In this document: one piece after another, positions 38,338 through 54,585 of the stretch | Position numbering within the stretch: position 1 is the stretch's first letter | How the letters are laid out: every line of letters starts with the position of its first letter | IMG/VR virus record: IMGVR_UViG_3300027749_002876 | Coordinates: 372,001-436,000 of that record | Direction: 5' to 3' (one strand) | DNA: 64,000 nucleotides | Program-made: the position numbers and the translations under genes | The notes under the pieces: generated by a model | What the model saw: the letters and a program-made list of their open reading frames with translations, nothing else | Told to the model about the DNA's origin: nothing | Database searches by the model: none

Positions 38338-38454
38338 ATGTTAGAAACATTATTTTGGTTAGCACTAGGTGCTTTTATTGGTTGGAATTTCCCTCAACCT
38401 CAGTTTGCAAAGAATATTCAAGCAAAAATATTGACTATGTTCAAAAAGGATTAA
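38338..38454 (+). CDS. Small membrane protein (38 aa)
   Basis: Strong SD AAGGAG; MLETLFWLALGAFIGWNFPQP; below the ORF-track cutoff. Confidence 0.7.
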   Translation: MLETLFWLALGAFIGWNFPQPQFAKNIQAKILTMFKKD

Positions 38455-38492
38455 TAACCCTCACAAACGGGCGCACCTAGATAAATAGTTAT

Positions 38493-39098
38493 ATGAAAAA
38501 TAAATATGGCTTATTAATATCTTGTTCGCATTGTGGAATTGAGTTTGTAACTAAACCTAGATTTTTAGAGTTTTGTTCAACTCCTTGCAAAAATCCGATA
38601 AATCGTGTAGGTAATATACCTTGGAACAAGGGTATAAAAATGACACCTGACCAAAAGTCTAAACTAAACACAGAAGGTCTTAAAAAGGGTCATGGTTGGA
38701 ATAAGGGGAAAGATAATCTGACACAAAAAGAAAAATGGACCGGTTCATCAAACCCAAACTGGGAAGGTAAATTAAACAATCAAAGGCCTAAAAAACAGAT
38801 AAATGATGAATTAGTTAAATACAAGAGAGAATGTAGGAAGGCAACTCGCCGGTCTCTATATAGACTTAGAAAGCAAAATTTAATGCCAGTGACTGGTAAA
38901 AAGAAAACAGATATTCAAGTAGATCACATCATACCCTTTAAACAGGGATATGAACTTAAAATTGATCCTATGATTATAGGACATCTATGTAATTTAAGAT
39001 TTATAACAGGTGAGGAAAACAGAAAGAAATGGGATACGTTTCAATCTGAAGAAATAGTTAATAATATAATGGAGAACTTTAATGGCATATTCAGATAA
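38493..39098 (+). mobile_element. Free-standing HNH homing endonuclease overlapping the iscU start
   Basis: CSHC..C..C zinc motif, PWNKG repeats, VDHIIP...NLRFI...ENRKK. Confidence 0.85.
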
Positions 39099-39471
39099 AG
39101 TGTTGGATCACTATAATAACCCCCGCAATGCGGGAACTTTTGATAAGGAGGACACGCACGTTGGGACTGGTATGGTAGGAGCCCCGGCGTGTGGTTAGTT
39201 AGGAGATGTAATGAAACTCCAAATAAAAGTAGATAAATTAACAGGGATAATAACAGATGCCAAATTTAAAACGTATGGGTGCGGGTCGGCAATTGCTAGC
39301 TCAAGTCTTGTCACTGAGTGGGTCAAAGGTAAGACATTGGATGAAGCTGCCGAACTCCGAAACTCTCAAATCGCAGAAGAACTTGCACTCCCCCCAGTCA
39401 AAATCCATTGCTCAATCCTTGCGGAAGACGCCATCAAAGCCGCAGTAAATGATTATAAACAGAGGCACTAA
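39082..39471 (+). CDS. iscU: Fe-S cluster scaffold IscU interrupted by in-frame TAG within a 9-nt insert
   Basis: MAYSDKVLDHYNNPRN...GAPACG*LGDVMKLQI...FKTYGCGSAIASSS...LPPVKIHCSILAEDA; TAG at 39196-39198. Confidence 0.92.
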
Positions 39472-39776
39472 TGTCAAATGATACAGCAAAATACATAAAC
39501 AGCCGCCGCCGTCATAAAAATGATGTTGCAATTGCAAGACAAGTTCGTATTGCTAAACAACATGGTGTAAGTTTTTATGATAAATCAATTAAAGAACCAC
39601 ATCGTTTAGCAAAACATCATGTTATGGATTGTGGCAATCCACAATGCCCACTATGTGGCAATCCACGTAGGACACATAAAGATACACTAACAGCACAAGA
39701 GAAACGATTGTACCAAGATACTGAAAAAGCTACAGATAAACATAGCAATGGTTTAATAAAACAAATTGAAGATTGA
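39471..39776 (+). CDS. Hypothetical basic zinc-finger protein
   Basis: CGNPQCPLCGNPRR. Confidence 0.65.
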   Translation: MSNDTAKYINSRRRHKNDVAIARQVRIAKQHGVSFYDKSIKEPHRLAKHHVMDCGNPQCPLCGNPRRTHKDTLTAQEKRLYQDTEKATDKHSNGLIKQIED

Positions 39777-39808
39777 CATCTTTGATATACACACATAAAG
39801 GAATAAAA

Positions 39809-40276
39809 ATGTCAGAAACTATTAATAGCCTACACAGTGCATATTCTGGTGAAAGTCAAGCGCATACTAAGTATCGCTACTTTGCTAAAATCGCACGTGC
39901 AGAAGGATATGAAGATATCGCAAAACACTTTGAACATACAGCAGACCAAGAGTTGTTGCATTCATGGGGTCACCTAGAACTAATCATTGGTAAACCAGAT
40001 ACACGTAAATGTTTAGAGTTAGCAATTGAAGGTGAAACATATGAGTTTACGGAGATGTATCCTCACTTCCGTGAAGTTGCTGAATTTGAAGGTAACTTAC
40101 AGGCCGCAAATGAAGCAACGCATCAGATTGAAGAATCACAGCGCCATGCTAGTGAATTCAAAGAAGTATTGAAGAAAGCAGAAAAGCGTTTTGCGGCACT
40201 GGCTAAAGTTGAACAACGTCATGCTGAAGCATATCAAGCTAAGTTAGATGAATTAAATCAAGTGGAGGCAAGATAA
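39809..40276 (+). CDS. Rubrerythrin (ferritin-like)
   Basis: AYSGESQAHTKYRYFAKIARAEG, QELLH, EGETYE..EMYP, EQRH. Confidence 0.92.
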   Translation: MSETINSLHSAYSGESQAHTKYRYFAKIARAEGYEDIAKHFEHTADQELLHSWGHLELIIGKPDTRKCLELAIEGETYEFTEMYPHFREVAEFEGNLQAANEATHQIEESQRHASEFKEVLKKAEKRFAALAKVEQRHAEAYQAKLDELNQVEAR

Positions 40277-40404
40277 TGGATCATATTTGCGTAATTTGTG
40301 GCCATGTACACGATGAAGAAACAGAAGGTAAATGGGATGATTTACCAGAAGATTTTCCTTGCCCAGAGTGCGGTGGTTTTAAGGTCGATTACGAAACTAT
40401 TTAA
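40276..40404 (+). CDS. Rubredoxin (42 aa)
   Basis: CVICGH...WDDLPEDFPCPECG; SD GGAGG; not in the ORF track. Confidence 0.92.
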   Translation: MDHICVICGHVHDEETEGKWDDLPEDFPCPECGGFKVDYETI

Positions 40405-44960: not shown

Positions 44961-45046
44961 TTCTAAAATATACCTAGTGAAAAACAATATTAGCTGAAAA
45001 CGCTAGACCCATTAGATCAGGGAGTACTAGGTGTGTTTTAGAATGC
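44958..45046 (+). ncRNA. Stem-bracketed small RNA A
   Basis: gcattctaaaatatacctagt / actaggtgtgttttagaatgc closing stem with G-U pairs. Confidence 0.65.
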
Positions 45047-45121
45047 GACCGTAACTCAGATGGATAGAGTACTAGGCTACGAACTTAGGAGTCGGGAATT
45101 CGAATTTCTCCGGTCGCACCA
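45045..45121 (+). tRNA. tRNA-Arg(ACG)
   Basis: Cloverleaf, loop CT-ACG-AA, CCA end. Confidence 0.92.
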
Positions 45122-45127
45122 ATATAT

Positions 45128-45204
45128 GGAAGCATAACTCAGTTGGCTAGAGTAACGGACTTTTAATCCGTGAGTCGAGGGTTCGAATCCCTCTGCTTCC
45201 ACCA
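45128..45204 (+). tRNA. tRNA-Lys(TTT)
   Basis: acgga-CT-TTT-AA-tccgt, GTTCGAATC, CCA. Confidence 0.95.
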
Positions 45205-45217
45205 GTATAAATACTGC

Positions 45218-45403
45218 ATGATAATTCAAACCATATCAGCAGTAAACGATATTACCAATCATCAATATCGCACAACAGTTTATAAAACATTAGAAGATCC
45301 TGCAACTAATAAGCAATACTTAGAGGTTGTACAGTATCTATACGATAAAGTAGGTAAATTAGAGCCTACACATTATAATAATCAAATAGATAAAAAAGCC
45401 TAA
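45218..45403 (+). CDS. Small hypothetical protein
   Basis: ATG 4 nt after TATAAATA, fills the tRNA spacer. Confidence 0.6.
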   Translation: MIIQTISAVNDITNHQYRTTVYKTLEDPATNKQYLEVVQYLYDKVGKLEPTHYNNQIDKKA

Positions 45404-45493
45404 GGAAACGTGGCAGAGTCCGGCCTATTGCAACAGTCTTGAAAACTGTCGATCCGAAAGGGTCCGTGAGTTCGAATCTCACCGTTTCTACCA
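45404..45493 (+). tRNA. tRNA-Ser(TGA)
   Basis: acagt-CT-TGA-AA-actgt, long variable arm, CCA. Confidence 0.95.
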
Positions 45494-45494
45494 T

Positions 45495-45571
45495 GGTGCT
45501 TGTCGTCAAGCGGTTAAGACCTCGGATTGTGATTCCGATATACGTGGGTTCGAATCCCATCAAGCACCCCA
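45495..45571 (+). tRNA. tRNA-His(GTG)
   Basis: tcgga-TT-GTG-AT-tccga, G-1/C73. Confidence 0.95.
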
Positions 45572-45572
45572 A

Positions 45573-45647
45573 GGATGTATAGCACAGCGGTAGTGCAATT
45601 CCTTCATACGGAATAGGTCAGTAGTTCAAATCTACTTACATCCACCA
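45573..45647 (+). tRNA. tRNA(CAT), elongator Met or Ile2
   Basis: attcc-TT-CAT-AC-ggaat, CCA. Confidence 0.88.
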
Positions 45648-45651
45648 TTAC

Positions 45652-45728
45652 AGCCTCATAGCTCAGTTGGTTAGAGCAATGTGTTGATAACGCATAGGTC
45701 CTCTGTTCGAGTCAGAGTGAGGCTACCA
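45652..45728 (+). tRNA. tRNA-Ile(GAT)
   Basis: atgtg-TT-GAT-AA-cgcat, CCA. Confidence 0.93.
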
Positions 45729-45733
45729 TTTAT

Positions 45734-45808
45734 ACCCCCTTCGCCAAGCGGTAAGGCCTCGGATTTTGATTCCGACATTCGGTGGTTCGAATCCATCAGG
45801 GGGTGCCA
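45734..45808 (+). tRNA. tRNA-Gln(TTG)
   Basis: tcgga-TT-TTG-AT-tccga, CCA. Confidence 0.95.
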
Positions 45809-45822
45809 GTGATAAATATAGA

Positions 45823-46377
45823 ATGATTTATTATAAACCATTAGAAATAGATTATTTTGCTACCATTATAAATAAATGTTTAGCATACGTAAAAACAGTC
45901 GATAGAGCCTATACTAGATCGTTGGCAAATACTAATTGGTATTATCTTGATTTAGAAATGTTAATGAAGGTATGCCCCGAACTTCAATTGGCATTTCAAA
46001 AACATGACTTAAAAATTATAATGGCAGCAGTCTATGTAATGTATTTACCTAAACACAGTAGACCTCATATTGACGCTTACCCTTCACACGCCAGAGTAAA
46101 TTTACCATTACTAAATTGTCAAGACACATATACTAATTTTTATACTAGTGACACTGAATCTCCAAGATATGTTAATCCAGATGGTGGTGGGAGATTCTGT
46201 TTCATGGCTGATAAGTATGAAAATCTAGTATTAGTTGATAGAGTAGAAATAAAACAAGCGACGGTGTTAAGAACAAAAGTATTGCATAGTGTGTATTTAC
46301 CCATAGATAATCCTGTGCCTAGAATTACACTATCATTAGCTTTTGACAAAGACCCTATTTATTTACTTGAAAATTAA
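45823..46377 (+). CDS. 2OG-Fe(II) oxygenase-like protein
   Basis: PHID...RVNLP...LHSV...RITLS; ATG 4 nt after ATAAATA. Confidence 0.6.
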   Translation: MIYYKPLEIDYFATIINKCLAYVKTVDRAYTRSLANTNWYYLDLEMLMKVCPELQLAFQKHDLKIIMAAVYVMYLPKHSRPHIDAYPSHARVNLPLLNCQDTYTNFYTSDTESPRYVNPDGGGRFCFMADKYENLVLVDRVEIKQATVLRTKVLHSVYLPIDNPVPRITLSLAFDKDPIYLLEN

Positions 46378-46385
46378 CTGTTTAT

Positions 46386-46535
46386 GGGATAGACGATAGG
46401 TTTAAGTCCCTGTCAATCTAATCACAGTGGGGTTAACTGTGATGACACTATAGTATGATTGACGGGTAGTATAAACTTGCCTATACGAGACAATCTAATG
46501 AGGCTTATTAACAATAAGATAGTTAGGCTCCCACC
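46386..46535 (+). ncRNA. Unidentified structured RNA
   Basis: cctgtcaatc/gattgacggg, atcacagt/actgtgat, cttatt/aataag; GGGA...TCCCACC ends. Confidence 0.6.
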
Positions 46536-46541
46536 TTTATT

Positions 46542-46616
46542 GGGTCCTTAGTTCAATGGATAGAATACGATGCTTCGAACTTCGGGATGTGGGTTCAATT
46601 CCTGCAGGACCCGCCA
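46542..46616 (+). tRNA. tRNA-Arg(TCG)
   Basis: Loop CT-TCG-AA, acceptor gggtcct/aggaccc, CCA. Confidence 0.9.
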
Positions 46617-46664
46617 ACAAGTGATTAAATACAATTAGTGATAATAACAGAAAAGGAGTACTAC

Positions 46665-47225
46665 ATGGCTGTTCTAGCACTAGATATCTCGGGAGTTCCC
46701 CGGCAATGGATATCAAATGATGACGCAATTACCTATAAAGCAAAAGATGCCATTGCATGGTCAATGGGGAACATTGTGGCTAGATATCGAGGTGGCACAC
46801 AAAATGACGGCACATTAAGTTACTTAGAAGCTAGTAGCATTATTGCCATCAAAGGTCATGGATTCAATCCATATAAACACTCATGTGTAGCACTAACTAA
46901 TAAAACATTGTTCGGTCGTGATAGACATGTATGTGCTTATTGCGGTGAACAGTTTCCCAATTATCATCTATTAAGTCGTGACCACATTGTCCCTAGAAGT
47001 AAGGGTGGTGAAAACACTTGGATGAACGTGGTTACCAGTTGTAAAACTTGTAACAGTAAAAAAGGACATAAGAGTTTAAAAGAAGTACGTATGGAATTAT
47101 TATACGCACCTTATGTCCCAAATCACTACGAAAATATGATACTACAACATAGAACTATACTTGCTGACCAAATGGAATATTTGTTAGCAGGTGTTCCAAA
47201 ACATAGTAGAATATTATTAAGTTAG
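46665..47225 (+). CDS. HNH endonuclease (McrA-like)
   Basis: RDRHVCAYCG...DHIVPRSKGG..TWMNVVTSCKTCNSKKG; SD AAGGAG. Confidence 0.9.
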   Translation: MAVLALDISGVPRQWISNDDAITYKAKDAIAWSMGNIVARYRGGTQNDGTLSYLEASSIIAIKGHGFNPYKHSCVALTNKTLFGRDRHVCAYCGEQFPNYHLLSRDHIVPRSKGGENTWMNVVTSCKTCNSKKGHKSLKEVRMELLYAPYVPNHYENMILQHRTILADQMEYLLAGVPKHSRILLS

Positions 47226-47254
47226 TGTACAATATTATTAAATAAAATACATAT

Positions 47255-47330
47255 TCCTTGATAGCTCAGTCGGTAGAGCAAAGCACTGTTAATGCTTGGG
47301 TCACACGTTCGAACCGTGTTCAAGGAGCCA
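47255..47330 (+). tRNA. tRNA-Asn(GTT)
   Basis: aagca-CT-GTT-AA-tgctt, CCA. Confidence 0.95.
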
Positions 47331-47337
47331 AATTTCC

Positions 47338-47411
47338 GCCCTACTAGTACAATGGTAGTACACTGGTTTTGTAATCCTGTGATGGCAGTTCAATTCTGTC
47401 GTGGGGCACCA
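47338..47411 (+). tRNA. tRNA-Thr(TGT)
   Basis: Loop TT-TGT-AA; anticodon stem contains mismatches; CCA. Confidence 0.8.
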
Positions 47412-47468
47412 AATAAATGCTGTTTTTAGAGTTGAGGACTAAATACTAGTATACAAGAAAGTTCAACT

Positions 47469-48068
47469 ATGAAAATGAGCAAATCACAAGCAGGTAAATT
47501 AGGCGCAGAAGTTTCTGCACTAATTACAGCAAAAAAAAAGCAAGCAAATATAGAAGCATATCTGTCTAACCCAAAAAAATGTGGGCATTGTAATGCACTC
47601 ATTAATTATGAGGGTAGATATAAAAAATTTTGTAATTCATCTTGCTCTGCATCACATAATAATACAAAAAGATTAATTGTTTCAACTAATAGTTGTCCTC
47701 AATGTAGTAAGCTAATTGGAAAAAATAGTAAATATTGTTCGGTTCGTTGTCAGCAAGATTTTCAATCAGCAGAAACTATTAGAAAATGGATTGCAAGGGA
47801 AACAATAACGGGATTATCTGCTGTTCGCCGGCATATCAAAGAACAACAGGATAGTAAATGTGCTGAATGCGGTATCGCTGAGTGGAATGGAAAAAATATA
47901 ACATTAGAGCTTGAGCATAGAGACGGAAACAGTGATAATAATACTCCTGAAAATTTATGTTTATTATGCCCAAATTGTCATAGCCAAACCCCAACATACA
48001 AAGCAAAAAATAAAGGTAAGGGTAGACATTCGCGCCGAGAGCGATACAAAAACGGTCAAAGTTATTGA
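47469..48068 (+). mobile_element. HNH homing endonuclease within the tRNA array
   Basis: Zinc ribbons plus CAECG...LELEHRDGN..NN...NL.LLCPNCHSQT. Confidence 0.9.
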
Positions 48069-48079
48069 CAACAAAGTAG

Positions 48080-48154
48080 CTGGCGTTAGTATAATGGATA
48101 ATACAATCGGCTTCTACCCGATGAATGTGGGTTCGATTCCTGCACGCCGGACCA
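48080..48154 (+). tRNA. tRNA-Arg(TCT) copy 1
   Basis: atcgg-CT-TCT-AC-ccgat, CCA. Confidence 0.93.
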
Positions 48155-48736
48155 TCATTGAATTAGAAGTTGCCAGTCACTATGACTATAATGGTAATCT
48201 TCTAATATTTCTAACATTCGTGAAAAAACTATTAAGGCTCTTTTATGATTTACCAGTTCAGTATGATGAATGTTTATTTTTTTCTCAACAAAAGATTTTA
48301 ATATATTATCACCCTCTTTTTTTAATTTGATTTTTTTTGCAACAATGTTCAATTTTGTTATTAGAGCGTTACAATCTACTATAGCAGTATTGGTTTGATT
48401 TTGTGCATGATGTATGTCAAACTTCATTTGTAAAATTAAATCGTCAAATTCTGGATTTATCTGTTGACTGTATTGTGATACCATATTTGAAAGTCTTGCA
48501 TAAACTTCAGCATCAAGATTGGTATCATCATAATGATCTCCGGTACTATCATAGTGTTCACGTTTAACAGGATCACTTAATGTTTCATATGCTAATTTGA
48601 TTCGTTTAAATTTTTCTATATCACCACCTTTATCGGGATGATGTGTTTGTGCTAGTATTCTATATTTTTGTTTGATATCATCGGGAGTACAATTTTTGGG
48701 TAATTCTAGTTCATCGTATAAGGTGTTGTTTTCCAT
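48155..48736 (-). CDS. DnaJ-domain (J-domain) protein
   Basis: LYDELEL...IKQKYRILA..HHPDKGGD...AYETLSDPVKR..YD. Confidence 0.92.
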   Translation of the reverse strand: MENNTLYDELELPKNCTPDDIKQKYRILAQTHHPDKGGDIEKFKRIKLAYETLSDPVKREHYDSTGDHYDDTNLDAEVYARLSNMVSQYSQQINPEFDDLILQMKFDIHHAQNQTNTAIVDCNALITKLNIVAKKIKLKKEGDNILKSFVEKKINIHHTELVNHKRALIVFSRMLEILEDYHYSHSDWQLLIQ

Positions 48737-48748
48737 ACGACTATTTAT

Positions 48749-48803
48749 CTGGGGTTAGCCTTCTAAGCAATCAATACAGGTTCTATTTTTGTACTATAGA
48801 CCA
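48749..48803 (+). pseudogene. Decayed tRNA-Arg(TCT) copy lacking the D-arm
   Basis: ctggggttag-[deletion]-ccttctaagcaatcaatacaggttc...gacca matches the tRNA at 50158-50232. Confidence 0.8.
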
Positions 48804-48807
48804 AAAT

Positions 48808-48836
48808 TTGACAATAAATTCAATCGGTACTATAAT
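48808..48836 (+). promoter_or_regulatory. Sigma70 promoter
   Basis: TTGACA-17-TATAAT. Confidence 0.85.
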
Positions 48837-48925
48837 ATATGTATAGATTGATTTAGCAGGTATGTTTATAATAAAACCCGCTGATTATTTGTATAAAAAA
48901 CACATCATTAAATACGGAGTTTTCC

Positions 48926-50104
48926 ATGAGAATTAATTCTATTGCTAGTACGATATTAGCAATCATACTTGTAGGATGCGGTGGCGGAGGTGGTCAACCA
49001 ACTACACCTATCATTGAAGCATATCCTCAAATTATAGATAACAATATAAAAAACAAGTTTGCTATTAAAAGTGTAAACATGGTTTTAAATAGTGATAGCC
49101 TGTTAGGACTACCCGGATGGACTAACATTGATGACCATATTAAAAACATTAAAGCATTGGGTGCTAATGATGTTAAAGTAACGATTAGTGCAGGGTATTA
49201 CGATACCCCATCTTCTAATAGTCCTAATTCAAATATTAACTTTAATCCAAGTGACAATGATTTGCTAACATTCTTTCGAAAGCTTAAAGCGGCAGGTTTA
49301 ACTATAACAGTTTACCCTTTTGTACATAAAAATACAAACGTTACCAATTTGTTAAGTACTGTTCATTCATCACCTTCTAATTTTGACGAATGGATATCTA
49401 ACCATACTAGTAGTATGTCAAGAATAGCAAATATAGCACAGCAAGGATCTGTGGATAGATTTGTAATTATAGGAGATGAGGTTCAACATCTAACGTATGA
49501 TGTTAAAAATCAAAATGGTTGGTTAAATCTCATTACAGAAATACGCAAGGTATATAAAGGACAATTAACCACTGTAATATATTCAAATGGAATGTACTAC
49601 AATGGAAAAAATCAGGTTGATATGGTTGGTGAGACTATATTAAGTAAATTGGATATTATTGGTGTAGGATGGTTTCCTAAATACTTAACTAATTCAAATA
49701 ATCCAACAGTTGCTGATTTGATTGCAGGTTGGAAAAATAATACAAATGGTGTAGACACTATTAAGTTTTTTGAATTAGTTAATCAAAAATATAAAAAACC
49801 AATTTGGATAGCTGATATGGCAATTCACAGTTTTGACGGAGACAATATTGATCCTGATAATATATACAACAACCTAATTAATTTAGTAACGGACGAACAG
49901 GAGCAAGCCGATGAATATGAAGCACTATTTACGGTATTGAGTTACAACATGGGCAATTGGTTTTTGGGAATGAGCATTGACAGTTATAACAATTTTCCTA
50001 GCAATTATACATTGCCAAGGCATTTAAATTCACCGTATAGTGAAGATATACGAGGTAAGATCGCTGAGGGTGTTGTCCGTAAATGGTATCGTCAGAAGAT
50101 GTAG
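48926..50104 (+). CDS. Lipoprotein with TIM-barrel glycoside hydrolase-like (GH113/GTA-like) domain
   Basis: Lipobox LVGC; IGDEV...IRKVYKGQLT...LDIIGV...KPIWIAD...DEQEQADEYEA. Confidence 0.65.
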   Translation: MRINSIASTILAIILVGCGGGGGQPTTPIIEAYPQIIDNNIKNKFAIKSVNMVLNSDSLLGLPGWTNIDDHIKNIKALGANDVKVTISAGYYDTPSSNSPNSNINFNPSDNDLLTFFRKLKAAGLTITVYPFVHKNTNVTNLLSTVHSSPSNFDEWISNHTSSMSRIANIAQQGSVDRFVIIGDEVQHLTYDVKNQNGWLNLITEIRKVYKGQLTTVIYSNGMYYNGKNQVDMVGETILSKLDIIGVGWFPKYLTNSNNPTVADLIAGWKNNTNGVDTIKFFELVNQKYKKPIWIADMAIHSFDGDNIDPDNIYNNLINLVTDEQEQADEYEALFTVLSYNMGNWFLGMSIDSYNNFPSNYTLPRHLNSPYSEDIRGKIAEGVVRKWYRQKM

Positions 50105-50107
50105 GGC

Positions 50108-50136
50108 TTGACACTAAATGAGTATTCTGCTATAAT
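50108..50136 (+). promoter_or_regulatory. Sigma70 promoter
   Basis: TTGACA-17-TATAAT with TGn. Confidence 0.85.
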
Positions 50137-50157
50137 ATAGACAAGCCAAAAATCTAT

Positions 50158-50232
50158 CTGGGGTTAGTATAATGGATAATACAGCTGCCTTCTAAGCAGT
50201 CAATACAGGTTCGATTCCTGTACCCCGGACCA
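50158..50232 (+). tRNA. tRNA-Arg(TCT) copy 2
   Basis: gctgc-CT-TCT-AA-gcagt, CCA. Confidence 0.95.
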
Positions 50233-50261
50233 AATGTTGTTTATTTACAACAACTAATAGT

Positions 50262-50372
50262 TTGACAATAAATCCAAATAGTGCTATACTCTATGTATAG
50301 ATTGATTGAACAAGTTCTTGGACACAGAGACACAAAAAAGAATTTGACAATAAATGGTGATTGTGATACAAT
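50262..50372 (+). promoter_or_regulatory. Tandem sigma70 promoters
   Basis: TTGACA-17-TATACT (50262-50290) and TTGACA-17-TACAAT (50344-50372). Confidence 0.8.
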
Positions 50373-50412
50373 CATAGCATGAGTTGAAAAAGTCATCGTA
50401 CTAATCAACAAA

Positions 50413-50424
50413 GTTCTTTAAAAA
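50413..50424 (+). promoter_or_regulatory. boxA-like Nus antitermination site
   Basis: GTTCTTTAAAAA fits GYTCTTTAANA, about 35 nt into the leader of a stable-RNA transcript. Confidence 0.65.
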
Positions 50425-50460
50425 GTTAAGTTATCATATAGCCCTGTACAAGTTACAGGG

Positions 50461-50695
50461 ACTATATGTAAACATATTAAGGGTTACCTGATCCGTTAGG
50501 ATGTACGAAGGTTATAAGGGTATCGACGGATACACGCCGAGACATACATCAGGAAGCGTATGATAACGAAAGTTATGAACGTGACGGGCAGTTAGGCAGT
50601 AATGACGAAGTTCAGAGTTCCCGGTGTACAAGCCGGGGTACAGGAGACGGTCCTGGACAGACGAATGTAGTTCCCATAATGTGTTTTCATATAGT
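50461..50695 (+). ncRNA. Stem-bracketed ornate RNA B (about 195-nt core)
   Basis: Closing stem actatatgtaaacatatta/taatgtgttttcatatagt; internal atccgtt/gacggat, catac/gtatg, ataac-GAAA-gttat, cccgg/ccggg, cagga/tcctg. Confidence 0.75.
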
Positions 50696-50825
50696 GTGTT
50701 ATTAGTTTTGCTGATGTAAGCCATGGGGGAAACGTCAACCCTGAGTAACTATGTATATAAACGGTAGTGTGGCCACCAATTCCGTTGAGACATAGCAAAC
50801 AGTGCGTCAGCAAAACTAATAATAT
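50696..50825 (+). ncRNA. Stem-bracketed RNA C
   Basis: ttattagttttgctgatg/cgtcagcaaaactaataa closing stem; internal ctatgt/acatag, aacgg/ccgtt. Confidence 0.7.
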
Positions 50826-50828
50826 TTG

Positions 50829-50904
50829 GCTCGGTTCATCTAGCGGCCTAGGATAGTGCCCTTTCACGGCATTCACACGGGTTCGAATCCCGTACCGAGC
50901 TCCA
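50829..50904 (+). tRNA. tRNA-Glu(TTC)
   Basis: gtgcc-CT-TTC-AC-ggcat, CCA. Confidence 0.95.
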
Positions 50905-51104
50905 GTATCCCGTTACTATTTTCGTTAAAATAGCGTTTGATTAGCGACAGAGATCCGGTGGCAGAAAACCGTTAGCGTGAGGATTAAAAATACCCTCGCA
51001 GGCTCTGATAGGCAGAATCTCAACTGCACACAGACTTTGAATAAATGAGATGGACAGAGTAACCGCTCAATTAAGGGCTGGCGTGGAAACAAGTAGCTTA
51101 TACT
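50905..51104 (+). ncRNA. Unidentified multi-stem RNA between tRNA-Glu and tRNA-Tyr
   Basis: ctatttt/aaaatag, cggt/accg, gcg..gagg/cctcgc, atctca/tgagat stems; no credible ORF. Confidence 0.6.
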
Positions 51105-51110
51105 AATTTT

Positions 51111-51195
51111 GGAGATGAAGCATCAATGGTGATGCAGTGGATTGTAAATCCGCCGCCTTATGGCACGACTGGTTCAATCCCAGTAATCTCCACCA
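51111..51195 (+). tRNA. tRNA-Tyr(GTA)
   Basis: gtgga-TT-GTA-AA-tccgc, long variable arm, CCA. Confidence 0.93.
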
Positions 51196-51200
51196 ATATT

Positions 51201-51275
51201 GGTCTCAAAGTGTTCACGGACGCATACATGCCTGTCACGCATGAGGAGCGGGATCGTTACCCGCTGGGACCGCCA
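51201..51275 (+). tRNA. tRNA-Asp(GTC)
   Basis: catgc-CT-GTC-AC-gcatg; atypical T-loop ATCGTTA. Confidence 0.88.
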
Positions 51276-51281
51276 AAATAT

Positions 51282-51310
51282 TTGACAACAAAAACTATTT
51301 GATATATAAT
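51282..51310 (+). promoter_or_regulatory. Sigma70 promoter
   Basis: TTGACA-17-TATAAT. Confidence 0.85.
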
Positions 51311-51327
51311 ACAGATTGTTTATAAAT

Positions 51328-51412
51328 GCGGGCATGGGGAAATTGGTTAGACCCAATAGACTTAAAATCTATCGCCTTGTGCATCCCGGTTCGAGTCCGG
51401 GTGCCCGCACCA
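51328..51412 (+). tRNA. tRNA-Leu(TAA)
   Basis: ataga-CT-TAA-AA-tctat, long variable arm. Confidence 0.95.
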
Positions 51413-51421
51413 AAGAATGAT

Positions 51422-51498
51422 GCCCCTTTAATTAAATCAGGTTATAATGCCGGCCTCATAAGCCGTTTTTCTGGGTTCAAATCCCAGCGGGGGTACCA
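51422..51498 (+). tRNA. tRNA(CAT), probably Ile2 (lysidine) or Met
   Basis: cggc-CT-CAT-AA-gccg, GCCCC acceptor, CCA. Confidence 0.8.
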
Positions 51499-51506
51499 TG
51501 TATTTA

Positions 51507-51595
51507 GGAGAGTTGGGTGAGTGGTTAAACCAGCAGATTGCTAATCTGTCACTGTGAATAACGGTGCGTGGGTTCGAATCCCACACTCTCCGCCA
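51507..51595 (+). tRNA. tRNA-Ser(GCT)
   Basis: gcaga-TT-GCT-AA-tctgt, long variable arm. Confidence 0.95.
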
Positions 51596-52157
51596 AACTT
51601 TTTAGTAATTCTTCAATGCTAATATTTAAGAATGATAACCCGAAAATAATTCGTGTGGTTTTGATATTTTCCACACTGTGAAAGTTTCTGCTATTCATTA
51701 GATACCAAGTACCAGTATTAAAAAAATATTCTTGTTGTGCAGATACCTCTTTATATGTAAGTACATTTCCTCCTACAGTATCACTTGCTAAATCTTCTTT
51801 ATCATAAAAGATAGTGCTAACATTATCTCCACCTAACTCAATATAAAAATTTATACTTGCTGTTCGCACTCTATCAGAGTGTGGTGGATATGATGCAAAT
51901 TCTATAGGATTTATATTATGTATAACACCAATTGTTGCATATAGTTTATGCTTAAACAATGGCTGGAATTCTTGTGTAGCTATGAGATTAATACTGTCGT
52001 TAGAAAAAAAATCACCAGCGGCACAGTTAATATCAGGACCTTGTATTGAACTGTGCCAATTTCTAGAACTAACATTTATTGGTCGATCTAGAGCGACTGA
52101 TTTAACTAAGTTAATTAAGTTATCAGATGGTTTAGGTAATTGCAAAGTATAAATCAT
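51549..52157 (-). CDS. 2OG-Fe(II) oxygenase-like protein; 3' end overlaps tRNA-Ser on the opposite strand
   Basis: PPHSD..TASINFY...FHSVEN...RIIFG; minus-strand TATAAATA upstream. Confidence 0.6.
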   Translation of the reverse strand: MIYTLQLPKPSDNLINLVKSVALDRPINVSSRNWHSSIQGPDINCAAGDFFSNDSINLIATQEFQPLFKHKLYATIGVIHNINPIEFASYPPHSDRVRTASINFYIELGGDNVSTIFYDKEDLASDTVGGNVLTYKEVSAQQEYFFNTGTWYLMNSRNFHSVENIKTTRIIFGLSFLNISIEELLKSLAESVGFEPTHRYSQ

Positions 52158-52196
52158 TTAATACAGTCTTATGTTTAAGACTGTATTTATACCGAA

Positions 52197-52386
52197 CGTT
52201 CCGGGTGTCTTCGGATAGTGTGACCCACACGATGAGAAGTACAGTGACATGTACGGGTGGTAGTCTTTAAACCTAAAGGCCGCTAGCAATGCGAGAACGG
52301 TCCCTGTCGGGAAGCGGGTGGAAGGAGTGTGTGATGGGTATGATAGCGTCATATCTTGATACTCTATAATTACCGCCGGGGGATGC
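52197..52386 (+). ncRNA. Unidentified GC-rich multi-stem RNA
   Basis: tccggg/cttcgga, ccac/gtgg around gtaca/tgtac, gtcttta/taaaggc, gggtatgat/gtcatatct, ggagtgt/atactct. Confidence 0.7.
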
Positions 52387-52387
52387 A

Positions 52388-52477
52388 GAGCATATTGAAA
52401 TACATTAAAGATAGGGTCGTATCGGTTCATTGAACCTTAGTACATACCAAGGTAGTTAGTGTGTTTCAATATGCTTT
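52388..52477 (+). ncRNA. Stem-bracketed small RNA D
   Basis: agcatattgaaatacattaa/ttagtgtgtttcaatatgct with G-U pairs. Confidence 0.65.
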
Positions 52478-52480
52478 TAT

Positions 52481-52556
52481 GTAGGTGTGTACCGAATGGT
52501 TAGGTAGCGGATTGCAAATCCGTGCTATGCAGGTTCGATCCCTGTCACCTACTCCA
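52481..52556 (+). tRNA. tRNA-Cys(GCA)
   Basis: gcgga-TT-GCA-AA-tccgt, U73, CCA. Confidence 0.95.
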
Positions 52557-52564
52557 GAATATAT

Positions 52565-52638
52565 GCGGGGTTGGCATATTGGTTGTGTCCTAGCCTTCCA
52601 AGCTAGTCAAAGGAGTTCGATTCTCCTACCCCGCTCCA
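52565..52638 (+). tRNA. tRNA-Gly(TCC)
   Basis: ctagc-CT-TCC-AA-gctag, U73, CCA. Confidence 0.95.
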
Positions 52639-52641
52639 AAA

Positions 52642-53202
52642 TTATCGTATAATAAGGTTAGAAAAAAGTTTAACGATATCATCCCATGCTATACGTCTGT
52701 CATTAGTTCGAAGGCTGTAACATTTTCTTGGTCCAATTCCAATTGCTCGGTGTATTGTAGAAGCATTTACTAAGTATGCCTTATTGTTGTTTGTATCATA
52801 CTGTTTGCTAGGAGTAAGTATAGGTTTGTATTTTGTAACTACTCCCCAGTTATCTTTATTTAAAGCCCCACCAGTAATTCCATCTACTTCAACCTCATCA
52901 TGGTCATAAAATTCTAGTACACCTGTACCACCGTCTATCCAATTAATGCCAAACATAAAATCTTCAGGAACTATTGCATCTGAATGCAATGCTCCTTTGA
53001 AATCTGTTTTTTTAAAATAACTTAGTTTACACCAATTTAAACCCAAAAGATTAATATATTCTGGTTTAAAAATATGATCGATTCTATCTAGTCTCATATA
53101 ATTAAATGGTAAATGGTCATCATCAAATCCCTTAAAGGAAGGCAATGTTACCTCACTGAATGCCGGTAAGTTTAACTCATATAGTTGTTCGGATGTAATC
53201 AT
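52642..53202 (-). CDS. 2OG-Fe(II) oxygenase-like protein
   Basis: LHSD...FGINW...IHRA...RKCYSLR. Confidence 0.55.
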   Translation of the reverse strand: MITSEQLYELNLPAFSEVTLPSFKGFDDDHLPFNYMRLDRIDHIFKPEYINLLGLNWCKLSYFKKTDFKGALHSDAIVPEDFMFGINWIDGGTGVLEFYDHDEVEVDGITGGALNKDNWGVVTKYKPILTPSKQYDTNNNKAYLVNASTIHRAIGIGPRKCYSLRTNDRRIAWDDIVKLFSNLIIR

Positions 53203-53230
53203 ATATATATTTAGTTGTTGACCAATAGTA

Positions 53231-53259
53231 TTGACAGATAAATAGTTTTTTGTTATAAT
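53231..53259 (+). promoter_or_regulatory. Sigma70 promoter
   Basis: TTGACA-17-TATAAT with TGn. Confidence 0.85.
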
Positions 53260-53267
53260 AGTAAAAT

Positions 53268-53344
53268 GCCCTGGTGGTGAAATTGGTAGACACAGCGGTC
53301 TTAGAAGCCGTAAGCTGAGAGTTCGAGTCTCTCCTAGGGCACCA
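53268..53344 (+). tRNA. tRNA-Leu(TAG) with short variable region
   Basis: gcggt-CT-TAG-AA-gccgt, only 5 nt before the T-stem. Confidence 0.88.
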
Positions 53345-53420
53345 AACTAAAACATATTAAACAGATGGATACAAGCTGTAGGTATACAGTGGTAACAGAA
53401 TGGTTAGTATGTTTTAGTTT
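53345..53420 (+). ncRNA. Stem-bracketed small RNA E
   Basis: aactaaaacatattaa/ttagtatgttttagtt fills the Leu-Ala spacer. Confidence 0.6.
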
Positions 53421-53494
53421 GGGGGATTGATGTAATGGGAGCCTGGGACCTTTGCAAGGTCTTCGTAACAGTTCGATTCTGTTATCCTCCACCA
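53421..53494 (+). tRNA. tRNA-Ala(TGC)
   Basis: ggacc-TT-TGC-AA-ggtct, G3-U70. Confidence 0.93.
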
Positions 53495-53500
53495 AGATAG

Positions 53501-53575
53501 CGCGGGGTAGAGAAGTAGTAACTCATCAGGCTCATAACCTGAAGATCGGCGGTGCGAATCCGTCCCCCGCATCCA
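53501..53575 (+). tRNA. Initiator tRNA-fMet(CAT)
   Basis: CGCGGGG 5' end with C1:A72 mismatch; tcagg-CT-CAT-AA-cctga. Confidence 0.9.
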
Positions 53576-53579
53576 GTTA

Positions 53580-53656
53580 CGGAGTGTAGCGCAGTCTGGT
53601 AGCGCACCTGGTTTGGGACCAGGGGGTCCAAAGTTCGAATCTTTGTACTCCGACCA
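53580..53656 (+). tRNA. tRNA-Pro(TGG)
   Basis: cctgg-TT-TGG-GA-ccagg, CCA. Confidence 0.95.
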
Positions 53657-53678
53657 TAGTTTTTTAAAAGGAAATGTT

Positions 53679-53846
53679 ATGACATGTAGAGGATATGATT
53701 CACGGGCAGTTAAACTTCCCAAAGCAGTTAAACGTGCGGCAACACTTATTCGTGATGCACATGTACGTGGAGCTTTTATTCGTAGTTTTGTAGAGATTGA
53801 AAAAAGCAATTCACGTACAAGTTCTCGTAAGGATAATAGCAAATGA
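53679..53846 (+). CDS. Small basic hypothetical protein
   Basis: SD AAGGA; 55 aa. Confidence 0.6.
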   Translation: MTCRGYDSRAVKLPKAVKRAATLIRDAHVRGAFIRSFVEIEKSNSRTSSRKDNSK

Positions 53847-54022
53847 CTAAAGGTAGCTTGCCAAGACCATACAGTGTTGATTTAAATACATTTGACAACA
53901 ACTGGAACAATATTTTTCGCAAGCCTGATCCAAGAACTATTGAGGATCAACAGAATGAAGATGAAGCGTTTGAAAAAATTGCTAATCAAACAGAAGTTAA
54001 AGATAGTAACCAAGGTGGTTAA
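53843..54022 (+). CDS. Small phage protein (59 aa)
   Basis: MTKGSLPRP...FDNNWNNIF; ATGA coupling; not in the ORF track. Confidence 0.65.
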   Translation: MTKGSLPRPYSVDLNTFDNNWNNIFRKPDPRTIEDQQNEDEAFEKIANQTEVKDSNQGG

Positions 54023-54027
54023 ATATC

Positions 54028-54103
54028 GGGTCGTTAGCTCAGTTGGTAGAGCGTCTGCCTTACACGCAGAATGTCGGGAGTTCGAGTCTCTCACGACCCA
54101 CCA
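54028..54103 (+). tRNA. tRNA-Val(TAC)
   Basis: tctgc-CT-TAC-AC-gcaga, CCA. Confidence 0.96.
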
Positions 54104-54118
54104 AACAAAGGAGTAATT

Positions 54119-54259
54119 ATGAGCAAAAGTGAAGATGTAATCAACAGAGCATACGGTCACATTGTGAAAGAAGTTAATCCTACAATTAGTTTTGATATAC
54201 TTGTATTTCGTGGTTTCAAATACTATTGGTACAAGTTGATTAGAAAAGTAACAAGATAA
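54119..54259 (+). CDS. Small hypothetical protein
   Basis: SD AAGGAG; 46 aa. Confidence 0.55.
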   Translation: MSKSEDVINRAYGHIVKEVNPTISFDILVFRGFKYYWYKLIRKVTR

Positions 54260-54284
54260 CCAAGTTTAACAATAGAAAGATGAT

Positions 54285-54506
54285 ATGACTGAAAGCAGAG
54301 CAAGATATACAAGTGAAGAAGCCGCACTCATGGTCGGTAGTCGATTTGATTTAGTTCTTATTGCCTCACAACGTGTAAGAGAATTAAAGCGTGGGCATAA
54401 ATCATTGCTCAATACAAAAGCAGGACCCACTGTAACTGCATTAATGGAAATTGAAGCTGGACTAGTTGGACGAGAATATCTCAAACGTATTAGAAAAAAT
54501 TTATAA
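54285..54506 (+). CDS. rpoZ: RNA polymerase omega subunit homologue
   Basis: ARYTSEEA...GSRFDLVLIASQRVREL...PTVTALMEIEAGLV aligns with RpoZ GNRFDLVLVAARRARQ...TVIALREIEEGLI. Confidence 0.88.
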   Translation: MTESRARYTSEEAALMVGSRFDLVLIASQRVRELKRGHKSLLNTKAGPTVTALMEIEAGLVGREYLKRIRKNL

Positions 54507-54511
54507 ACAAT

Positions 54512-54585
54512 GTCTCTCTAGTATAATGGCAGTACTGCGGTCTCCAAAACCGTTAGTGGGGGTTCGAGTCCCTCGGGGGATGCCA
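54512..54585 (+). tRNA. tRNA-Trp(CCA)
   Basis: gcggt-CT-CCA-AA-accgt, CCA. Confidence 0.93.

Follow-up and report, generated by a model that had tools for sequence, protein, structure and literature searches.

A mobile, putative homing-endonuclease cassette in phage iscU genes carries a very short stop-containing insert that is most likely bypassed by the ribosome

Programmed translational bypassing has rested almost entirely on one bacterial-virus example, gene 60 of phage T4, and its homologues, in which a non-coding gap of 50 nt (20 nt in the shortest relative) follows a Gly take-off codon and a stop, and ends at a Gly landing codon. In T4, this gap and the MobA homing endonuclease form one mobile element (Bonocora 2011, as cited in bioRxiv 10.1101/2022.08.31.505936), and a 5' stem-loop forming on the exiting mRNA is proposed to drive forward movement of the ribosome. 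Synthetic 9-nt 'stop-hops' also work in E. coli (Weiss et al. 1987, O'Connor et al. 1989, as cited in PMC5009743), although these engineered, stimulator-free hops were described as low-level, and the same review states that shorter natural counterparts were long expected but that none is known. Short inserts in protein genes, the 'byp' elements, are likewise skipped by ribosomes in the mitochondria of Magnusiomyces capitatus (Lang 2014, as cited in PMC5009743), whereas in other cases homing endonucleases have created genes in pieces, as with Aeh1 nrdA, split by MobE, and T4 genes 39 and 60. Here we describe an interrupted iron-sulfur scaffold gene, iscU, of a giant freshwater phage in the light of these systems.

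The gene lies in a window of 64,000 nt (positions 372,001 to 436,000 of IMG/VR record IMGVR_UViG_3300027749_002876, which is 524,565 bp in length), and all features described below are on the (+) strand. A sequence-only reading of the window had noted that iscU (39082-39471) is interrupted by a 9-nt insert containing a stop codon and had proposed a Gly-to-Gly hop over the stop that restores the canonical protein, while also raising the possibility that the insert protects the site from the neighbouring HNH gene. We checked all points of this observation and they hold. The first ORF (39082-39198) encodes 38 amino acids ending in GAPACG. The sequence here reads, in order, GGT (39193-39195), TAG (39196-39198), TTA (39199-39201), GGA (39202-39204) and GAT (39205-39207), where relatives read GGN GAY. 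The next ATG is at 39211, with AGGAG (39201-39205) 5 nt before it, and the frame stays open to the stop at 39469-39471. Pfam NifU_N (PF01592) matches both pieces in register, with E values of 3.8e-11 for profile positions 1-35 and 4.7e-35 for positions 38-123. The N piece (39082-39195) comprises codons 1-38, ending with ligand Cys37 and Gly38, and the C piece (39205-39471) comprises codons 39-126, resuming at Asp39 and containing ligands Cys63, His105 and Cys106. After the hop, the sequence is collinear with an intact paralogue in the same record and with 73 intact relatives.

To determine whether the insert might be an assembly error, we examined contigs from other samples. A contig from another sample (X2, 891 nt) spans 38370-39260 with no difference, a contig from a third study (X6, 928 nt) spans the insert with 22 substitutions and no gap, and an RNA-library contig (X19, 432 nt), which could however come from contaminating DNA, spans 38816-39227 with no gap. 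These data show that the insert is not an assembly error. A megablast of the locus against GenBank phages found nothing and a more distant search found only one NifU-like gene. In contrast, public viral contigs were found to hold 92 distinct iscU alleles with an insert at exactly this site, in 30 sequence variants, whereas 185,579 bacterial and archaeal species genomes have no such insert, none of the 37 chance pattern matches in those genomes being iscU.

The inserts are 6, 7, 8, 9 or 10 nt long (3, 45, 21, 17 and 6 alleles respectively), such that 72 of 92 (78%) are not a multiple of 3 and all three frames are represented. A stop codon (TGA in 45, TAG in 28 and TAA in 14) directly follows the Gly38 codon in 87 of 92 alleles, the remaining five having TGT, a common Cys codon in this genome. 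The proposed take-off codon (39193-39195) is GGN in all 92 alleles, the spacer (TTA at 39199-39201 in this genome) is variable in sequence and 0-4 nt long in relatives, and the proposed landing codon (39202-39204), which is GGA here and GGT in close relatives, including runs X6 and X19 with an A-to-T variant at 39204, is GGN directly 5' of the Asp39 codon in 91 of 92 alleles. In a set chosen without reference to the downstream sequence, 83 of 83 alleles have this form. A Gly-to-Gly hop restores the canonical protein in every variant, although one allele (L177) has no second Gly codon, whereas read-through and single frameshifts do not. Where a GGG overlaps the landing GGC, the take-off codon is always GGC or GGT. 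However, the wobble bases of the take-off and landing codons fall in the same decoding class in only 18 of 29 variants, whereas in the T4 family the two codons are always wobble-compatible.

We next asked whether the interrupted gene has been maintained. All N and C frames are intact, and both halves are under strong purifying selection, with median pS and pN values of 0.78 and 0.19 for codons 2-24 of the N piece, and of 0.82 and 0.16 for the codon-aligned C pieces of insert-bearing alleles. Five relatives that are 97-100% complete each have a single iscU locus, the interrupted one. The record studied here does contain a second, intact iscU, but this copy lies in a part that looks like a second, concatenated phage.

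Structure prediction with RNAalifold on 35 diverse alleles revealed a conserved mRNA hairpin (39155-39193), the 5' arm of which is at 39155-39164 (codon 25 position 2 to codon 28 position 2) and the 3' arm at 39184-39193 (codons 35-37 plus the first G of the take-off codon, which forms the closing pair), with an inner stem and loop between them. Its outer 10-bp helix is 100% paired, three of its pairs show compensatory changes, the hairpin contains invariant G.U pairs, and 0 of 500 shuffles reached the observed covariation. All 10 pairs form in 92 of 92 insert-bearing alleles against a mean of 5.8 in 73 intact ones, with MFE values of -23.1 and -10.5 kcal/mol respectively, and the window fold is -25.6 kcal/mol (z -2.4). 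The hairpin is absent from HNH-linked but uninterrupted alleles and decays in cassette-type alleles that have lost the insert: its two free pairs are kept in 174 of 174 cases with an insert, but in only 14 of 28 cases without it (Fisher p 3e-14). Residue 26 is Gln or His (codon CAN) in 92 of 92 insert-bearing alleles and in none of the 73 intact ones, and toggles between the two to keep one of these pairs. As base-pairing explains this residue, we set aside the idea that it is a nascent-peptide signal. No conserved structure was predicted 3' of the take-off codon, and a small GGAG/CUCC hairpin seen in the window fold is not conserved.

The insert travels with an upstream HNH-like gene. This ORF (38493-39098; 201 amino acids), the stop of which overlaps the iscU start by 17 nt, encodes a protein with an N-terminal four-Cys zinc ribbon and a putative C-terminal HNH motif, and C11, C14, C28, C32, D144, H145, N167 and N176 are invariant in 30 homologues. 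The Pfam HNH match is weak (E 0.0076, below the cut-off) and reaches E <= 0.01 in only 4 of 30 members, although phrog_5104 scores E 1e-14. The best structural match is the Gme HNH nicking endonuclease, at only Z 4.9. A sequence search of the profile against the PDB found nothing, and Foldseek gave only weak matches to Cas9 (best E 0.5). About two thirds of insert-bearing loci have this ORF directly upstream. The mobile cassette in this genome extends over 38457-39204 and holds the HNH gene with its leader, a synonymously recoded version of iscU codons 1-38 and the 9-nt gap. Homology with the HNH-less paralogous copy stops at 38456 and resumes after the insert, and a co-occurring HNH-less allele in run X2 joins 38456 to 39205 with 115 other letters between. 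The HNH and N piece are 86-99% identical between genomes whose flanks are 43-88% identical, and within this record the N piece is 74% identical in protein to the intact paralogue, against 98% for the C piece. The cassette has a mosaic distribution.

Taken together, although no protein, ribosome-profiling or reporter data exist and the full-length product has not been shown experimentally, these data indicate that the insert is probably the coding gap of a programmed short-range translational bypass carried by a mobile homing-endonuclease cassette, and this is the only reading that fits the comparative data. In the mechanism that we infer, the ribosome reaches GGT (Gly38) in the P site with a stop in the A site, where termination is slow. 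By then the 5' arm of the hairpin has left the ribosome and starts to pair with the 3' arm, which still lies in the E and P sites, pulling the mRNA out of the exit side, so that peptidyl-tRNA-Gly lets go of GGT and re-pairs with the next GGN, 6-10 nt downstream. Decoding would then resume at GAT to give the canonical GAPACGDVMKLQ IscU. As the hairpin lies 5' of the site and is partly inside the ribosome at take-off, its role is inferred from the T4 5' stem-loop model. By analogy with T4 MobA and gene 60, we further infer that the gap breaks the DNA site in conserved iscU that the HNH enzyme recognizes, so that the carrier genome is immune, while the bypass keeps the phage's only iscU gene working. 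Consistent with this, the HNH-linked alleles without a gap (L095 and L107) have several substitutions in codons 29-44 instead. The sequence-only reading is thus supported, but it could not see the conserved 5' hairpin, the variable insert length, or that the HNH is not a MobA relative.

Of the alternatives, all of which we consider unlikely, one is a two-piece IscU in which the N piece terminates at the stop and the C piece is initiated separately at Met41 from the SD-like GGNGA, the fragments then assembling as in T4 gp39/gp60 or the split NrdA of phage Aeh1. In its favour are the AGGAG before ATG 39211, the fact that a stop next to a restart is a normal coupling arrangement and the known ability of homing endonucleases to create genes in pieces. 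However, 17 of 92 alleles have Leu at codon 41 and no consistent alternative start (Val40 being coded by GTT, GTA, GTC or GTG), and Asp39 and Val40, which would go untranslated, are kept in 83 of 83 alleles and vary only at third positions. In addition, the second Gly codon and the hairpin have no role in this model, no added N- or C-terminal tails are present, and a 38-amino-acid fragment carrying one ligand Cys would have to dock without Asp39.

Equally doubtful is that recoding differs by variant, with stop read-through for 6- and 9-nt inserts and +1 or +2 frameshifting for 7-, 8- and 10-nt inserts, giving IscU with 2-3 extra residues between Gly38 and Asp39. Read-through would suffice for the in-frame insert of this window, and a TGA-C context, possibly like that of the RF2 frameshift site, is common among the 7- and 8-nt variants. 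Against this, three different mechanisms would be needed for one homologous element whose length drifts freely, the take-off Gly codons cannot re-pair in the +1 or +2 frame, and the inserted residues would differ in every variant and sit inside the invariant Cys37-Gly38-Asp39 ligand loop. We found no suppressor tRNA in the window or among the 56 tRNAs and one tmRNA of the whole record, and the anticodon loops are of the normal 7 nt, which led us to reject an expanded-anticodon tRNA-Gly. Genome-wide stop reassignment was also rejected, as TAG (which ends 13 of 284 long ORFs), TGA and TAA all end long ORFs and most inserts are out of frame.

Slightly less likely still, the insert might simply inactivate iscU, the cassette being a selfish element that spreads by homing, with halves that look conserved because each copy is a recent invasion of an intact gene or is refreshed by recombination. 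The C pieces are indeed mosaic and often close to HNH-less alleles, iscU is an auxiliary gene of which the host has its own copy, and MobA-type elements may be mildly parasitic. However, the N piece is cassette-specific in residue 26 and hairpin, and so evolved inside interrupted alleles, yet it shows the selection described above and no disruption in 92 alleles. About a third of interrupted loci have lost the HNH, so they cannot home, but their frames are intact, the gap keeps its stop and landing Gly while its length and spacer change, and the hairpin pairs are maintained by compensatory changes only while the gap is present. Finally, hairpin-guided excision and religation of the 6-10 nt between the two GG dinucleotides, as a micro-intron, is very unlikely despite the abutting hairpin and the direct GG repeats, as selection keeps a stop codon of any of the three kinds at the first gap position, which only has meaning for a ribosome, an RNA-library contig retains the insert, and such an excision is probably not performed by any known bacterial or phage enzyme.

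It is more likely than not that phage iscU genes carry the first natural family of minimal translational hops, driven by a hairpin that zips up behind the ribosome and ends on the take-off codon, and that the element evolved independently of T4 gene 60 as the immunity half of a different HNH homing cassette. In this context, a second mini-insert (5-6 nt, after Pro101) linked to a Vsr-like nuclease suggests that stop-containing micro-gaps might be a general way for homing endonucleases to mask target sites inside essential motifs. Such a family would supply about 30 natural variants of a far simpler element (a 39-nt hairpin, a Gly codon, a stop, 0-4 nt and a Gly codon), small enough to dissect completely in a reporter, and would bear directly on the recent proposal that pairing of exiting mRNA drives forward ribosome movement. 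It would also mean that a homing endonuclease unrelated to MobA reached the same solution to the problem of breaking its own DNA target inside an invariant active-site motif without breaking the protein. Such genes are currently annotated as two ORFs or as pseudogenes.

The best reading is a convergent, minimal analogue of the T4 gene 60 bypass cassette. As in T4, a free-standing HNH-type gene sits directly upstream of a conserved gene, the element brings its own recoded copy of the adjacent coding segment (like the T4 'HomR' region), the gap lies in a highly conserved motif, and some lineages have lost the endonuclease but kept the gap while others have lost the gap too. However, a gap of 6-10 nt leaves no room for the take-off stem-loop, or for the mini-SD about 6 nt 5' of the landing site, the hairpin ends on the take-off codon itself rather than 9 nt upstream, and the host gene is iscU, not topoisomerase, and is not additionally split by the endonuclease gene. 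The HNH protein is not homologous to MobA beyond the catalytic core, its HNH motif being C-terminal: alignment (hhalign) of the 30-member profile with the T4 gp60.1 and mobA remnants gave probabilities of only 0.2% and 1.1% respectively, with only a 15-column HNH core aligning. The synthetic stop-hops of E. coli have exactly the arrangement of this window, but here there is a natural, conserved family with a dedicated hairpin and gaps in all three frames. The mitochondrial byps rely on an unused A-site codon and on relaxed mitochondrial decoding, are context-independent and are not tied to a homing endonuclease. In the genes in pieces, a homing endonuclease likewise interferes with a conserved gene and function is retained, but those genes rely on separately initiated fragments with added tails, whereas here many alleles have no start codon for the second part and no tails are present.

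We first confirmed that the window carries an iscU gene interrupted as the sequence-only reading had described it. An ORF starting at 39082 encodes 38 residues ending GAPACG, with GGT at 39193-39195, TAG at 39196-39198, then TTA, GGA at 39202-39204 and GAT, after which the frame stays open to the stop at 39469-39471. Both parts match Pfam NifU_N in register, at profile positions 1-35 and 38-123, and a 201-aa ORF with an HNH-like motif (38493-39098; the HNH gene in what follows) overlaps the iscU start by 17 nt. Directly downstream of iscU and a 101-aa ORF, at 39773-40404, lie a 167-aa ORF and a 42-aa ORF with CxxC...CPxC motifs, which by eye resemble rubrerythrin and rubredoxin. None of the 25 tRNAs in the window, which form an array at 45045-54585 including three tRNA-Met and two identical-anticodon tRNA-Arg(TCT), is a suppressor, and neither is any of the 56 in the whole 524,565-bp record, which also has a tmRNA gene outside the window at C1:288480-288896 (C1 denoting coordinates of the record). 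In addition, TAA, TGA and TAG end 199, 72 and 13 respectively of 284 long ORFs. The insert is not an assembly error, as a contig from another sample (run X2) spans 38370-39260 without any difference, a contig from a later study (X6) spans it with 22 substitutions and no gap and has GGT as the second Gly codon, and a contig from a metatranscriptome library (X19) spans 38816-39227 with no gap. The last of these covers the 3' part of the HNH gene, the first iscU part (the N piece) and the insert in one piece, which suggests co-transcription, although DNA carry-over cannot be excluded.

A natural control was found in the same record, in the form of a second iscU copy at C1:139788-140165 (minus strand), outside the window, which is intact, has no insert and no HNH gene upstream, and so represents a natural unoccupied target allele. 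The 3' two thirds of the two copies are 89-100% identical in DNA, whereas the first 38 codons are only 74% identical in protein and are heavily recoded, and homology upstream stops at window position 38456. Run X2 also holds a contig that joins 38456 to 39205 with 115 other letters between, which is an HNH-less allele in the same water sample, so that a block at 38457-39204 replaces 115 nt of the plain allele. A self-comparison of the record showed that C1:1-172,923 is collinear, inverted and 65-90% identical to part of C1:172,924-520,476, that the last 4,089 bases repeat 172,924-177,012 at 99.6%, and that there are two tRNA arrays in the same gene order. As complete relatives are 329-367 kb, the record looks like a 347.5-kb circular phage genome joined to 173 kb of a related phage, with the window lying in the former.

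To determine how widely the interruption occurs, we searched IMG/VR with the second iscU part (the C piece), which returned 80 loci. Of these, 79 were uninterrupted and none of those 79 had a close HNH homologue upstream (locus L005 gave only a 34%-identity partial match), whereas the one interrupted locus also had the HNH gene. Searching with the HNH protein returned 35 loci at 53-100% identity and, wherever the junction could be seen, iscU was interrupted at the same site. The two exceptions, the HNH-linked loci L095 and L107, have no insert but carry several substitutions around the site instead (in these and in L005, VGVGLVG... and DVLQLS or DVLKLS), which may be an alternative route to masking the nuclease target site. 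A pattern scan for any 4-14 nt between the Gly38 and Asp39 codons found 79 loci, and a scan anchored only on codons 32-38 plus T[AG][AG] found 47 more. Pooled, these give 92 unique interrupted alleles in 30 variants, with inserts of 6, 7, 8, 9 and 10 nt in 3, 45, 21, 17 and 6 alleles respectively, of which 72 of 92 are not a multiple of 3. A stop codon directly follows the first Gly codon in 87 of 92 alleles (TGA 45, TAG 28, TAA 14), GGN directly precedes the Asp39 codon in 91 of 92, and the spacer between the stop and the second GGN is 0-4 nt and variable in sequence. Among alleles picked without reference to the downstream sequence, 83 of 83 have a stop, then 0-5 nt, then GGN-GAY-GTN. The same pattern in 185,579 bacterial and archaeal species genomes gave 37 chance hits, none of which is iscU.

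We then asked whether the interrupted gene is still used. Every interrupted allele keeps an intact 38- or 39-codon N frame, and the C frame is also intact unless it carries one of the further elements described below. Between alleles with different inserts, median pS is 0.78 and pN 0.19 for N codons 2-24, and 0.82 and 0.16 respectively for the codon-aligned C piece. The N piece is specific to interrupted alleles, as residue 26 is Q or H in 92/92 of them and in 0/73 intact alleles, indicating that its purifying selection acted while the gene was interrupted. In addition, about a third of interrupted loci no longer have the HNH gene upstream, so homing cannot refresh them, and five relatives that are 97-100% complete have one iscU locus each, the interrupted one.

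Given these data, we considered which decoding event could produce the protein. A hop of peptidyl-tRNA-Gly from the first GGN to the second restores the canonical GAPACGDVMKLQ in every variant, and it also explains why a stop codon of any of the three kinds is kept in the A-site position. A separate start at Met41 is possible in the window, where AGGAG lies 5 nt before the ATG. However, 17 of 92 alleles have Leu at codon 41 (CTT, CTA or TTA), with Val40 coded by GTT, GTA, GTC or GTG, and so have no start codon, and Asp39 and Val40, which would be untranslated in a split gene, are always kept and vary only at third positions. Single +1 or +2 shifts would need a different mechanism for each insert length and would also put 2-3 different residues into the invariant Cys37-Gly38-Asp39 loop. 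Read-through cannot serve the 78% of inserts that are out of frame.

Insert-bearing alleles show unusual conservation at synonymous sites upstream of the gap, codon 25 being NCG and codon 26 CAN. RNAalifold on 35 diverse alleles predicts a 10-bp stem between codon 25 position 2 to codon 28 position 2 and codons 35-37 plus the first G of the take-off codon, with a 5-bp inner stem between them; in the window the arms are 39155-39164 and 39184-39193, and the local fold is -25.6 kcal/mol, z -2.4. Three pairs of the 10-bp stem show compensatory changes, and two third-position pairs covary strongly, namely codon 26 position 3 with Ala36 position 3 (AU 19, CG 13, UA 2, GC 1) and Val27 position 3 with Pro35 position 3 (UA 17, CG 8, UG 5, GC 4, GU 1). 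This 10-bp helix is paired in 100% of cells, no shuffle out of 500 reaches the observed covariation, and sliding the partners drops pairing to 30-42%, while invariant G.U pairs point to RNA of the sense strand. The Q/H alternation at residue 26 is thus a by-product of keeping a base pair. All ten pairs form in 92/92 interrupted alleles, with a mean MFE of -23.1 kcal/mol, compared with a mean of 5.8 pairs and -10.5 kcal/mol in 73 intact alleles, and HNH-linked alleles without an insert lack the hairpin.

A further scan found 21 loci (L289-L309; 14 unique alleles) with the cassette-type recoded N piece (Q/H26 and the CGCA arm) but no insert, and mostly with no HNH gene, which are apparent revertants whose hairpin pairs are decaying. 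In these, the two free pairs are kept in only 14 of 28 cases, against 174 of 174 in insert-bearing alleles (Fisher p 3e-14), although relatedness among alleles is not corrected for in this test and one locus, L309, keeps an HNH gene and all 10 pairs with no insert. These data indicate that the hairpin is maintained only while the gap is there.

From these observations we infer a mechanism in which GGT is in the P site and the stop in the A site, the 5' arm and the inner stem having already left the ribosome while the 3' arm still occupies the E and P sites. Zipping of the main stem would draw mRNA out of the exit side, favouring release of the codon-anticodon pair and forward movement by up to about ten bases, which is the range of gap lengths seen, and the tRNA would then re-pair at the next GGN, with decoding resuming at GAT. 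Where a GGG overlaps the landing GGC by one base, the take-off codon is always GGC or GGT, which fits discrimination by the same tRNA. However, the wobble bases of the two Gly codons are not consistently compatible, as only 18 of 29 variants fall in the same class. Either two strong G-C pairs suffice in the P site, as argued for mitochondrial bypassing, or a four-way-reading tRNA-Gly is used. In this context, the phage tRNA-Gly(UCC) at 52565-52638, the only tRNA-Gly in the genome part that carries the interrupted iscU, has C at position 32 of the anticodon loop, a feature that may remove discrimination among the GGN codons (Lustig et al. 1993), although this is no more than a lead.

The protein encoded upstream has an invariant four-Cys ribbon and invariant D144, H145, N167 and N176, but its Pfam HNH matches are weak, and its best fold match, an HNH nicking endonuclease, reaches only Z 4.9, which is below the level considered safe for the method. 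Its distant relatives are unannotated ORFs next to the tail-tube gene of T4-like phages. Between genomes, the HNH gene and the N piece are 86-99% identical while the flanks are 43-88% identical, as expected for a homing element that carries its own recoded copy of the adjacent coding segment.

Phage iscU genes also carry further elements. Eleven loci have a second mini-insert between the Pro101 and Val102 codons, which is 6 nt long (TAA or TAG followed by CTN) in most and 5 nt and out of frame (TGACG) in locus L284. Of these loci, L284 and L286 have a downstream ORF of about 250 aa matching DUF559, a Vsr-like nuclease domain, whereas L137 has a similar ORF that gave only a weak NUMOD3 hit. The mini-insert may be a second bypass-type immunity insert with a near-cognate landing. 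In addition, several alleles have an insertion of about 340 aa exactly at ligand Cys63, with weak Hint-domain matches and an ...SHN/C junction, and so an intein-like element. This was seen in L165 (2197-3495, minus strand) and L224 (2248-3525, minus strand), both of which also carry the Gly38-Asp39 insert, and probably also in L289, L294, L299 and L309, judged from C-piece length alone, which have no such insert. All three cluster ligand positions are thus targets of selfish elements.

In the literature searched, we found no paper linking iscU with bypassing, and a 2016 review states that no natural stop-hop is known. The comparative evidence supports the proposal of the sequence-only reading that the insert is bypassed, whereas the immunity it would confer on its carrier is inferred by analogy with T4 MobA, and, although direct evidence for the protein product is missing, we consider with reasonable confidence that the gap is a programmed short bypass. 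The closest comparison is with phage T4. The survey of gene 60-type cassettes found them only in topoisomerase genes, with the shortest gap 20 nt, compared with 6-10 nt in iscU. The iscU-linked endonuclease is not related to the T4 MobA remnants beyond a 15-column core, and its motif is C-terminal, but by analogy with MobA the gap would break the enzyme's DNA target. The mechanism inferred here parallels the role proposed for the 5' stem-loop and for exiting-mRNA pairing in T4 gene 60, of which the iscU element would be a convergent, minimal counterpart.
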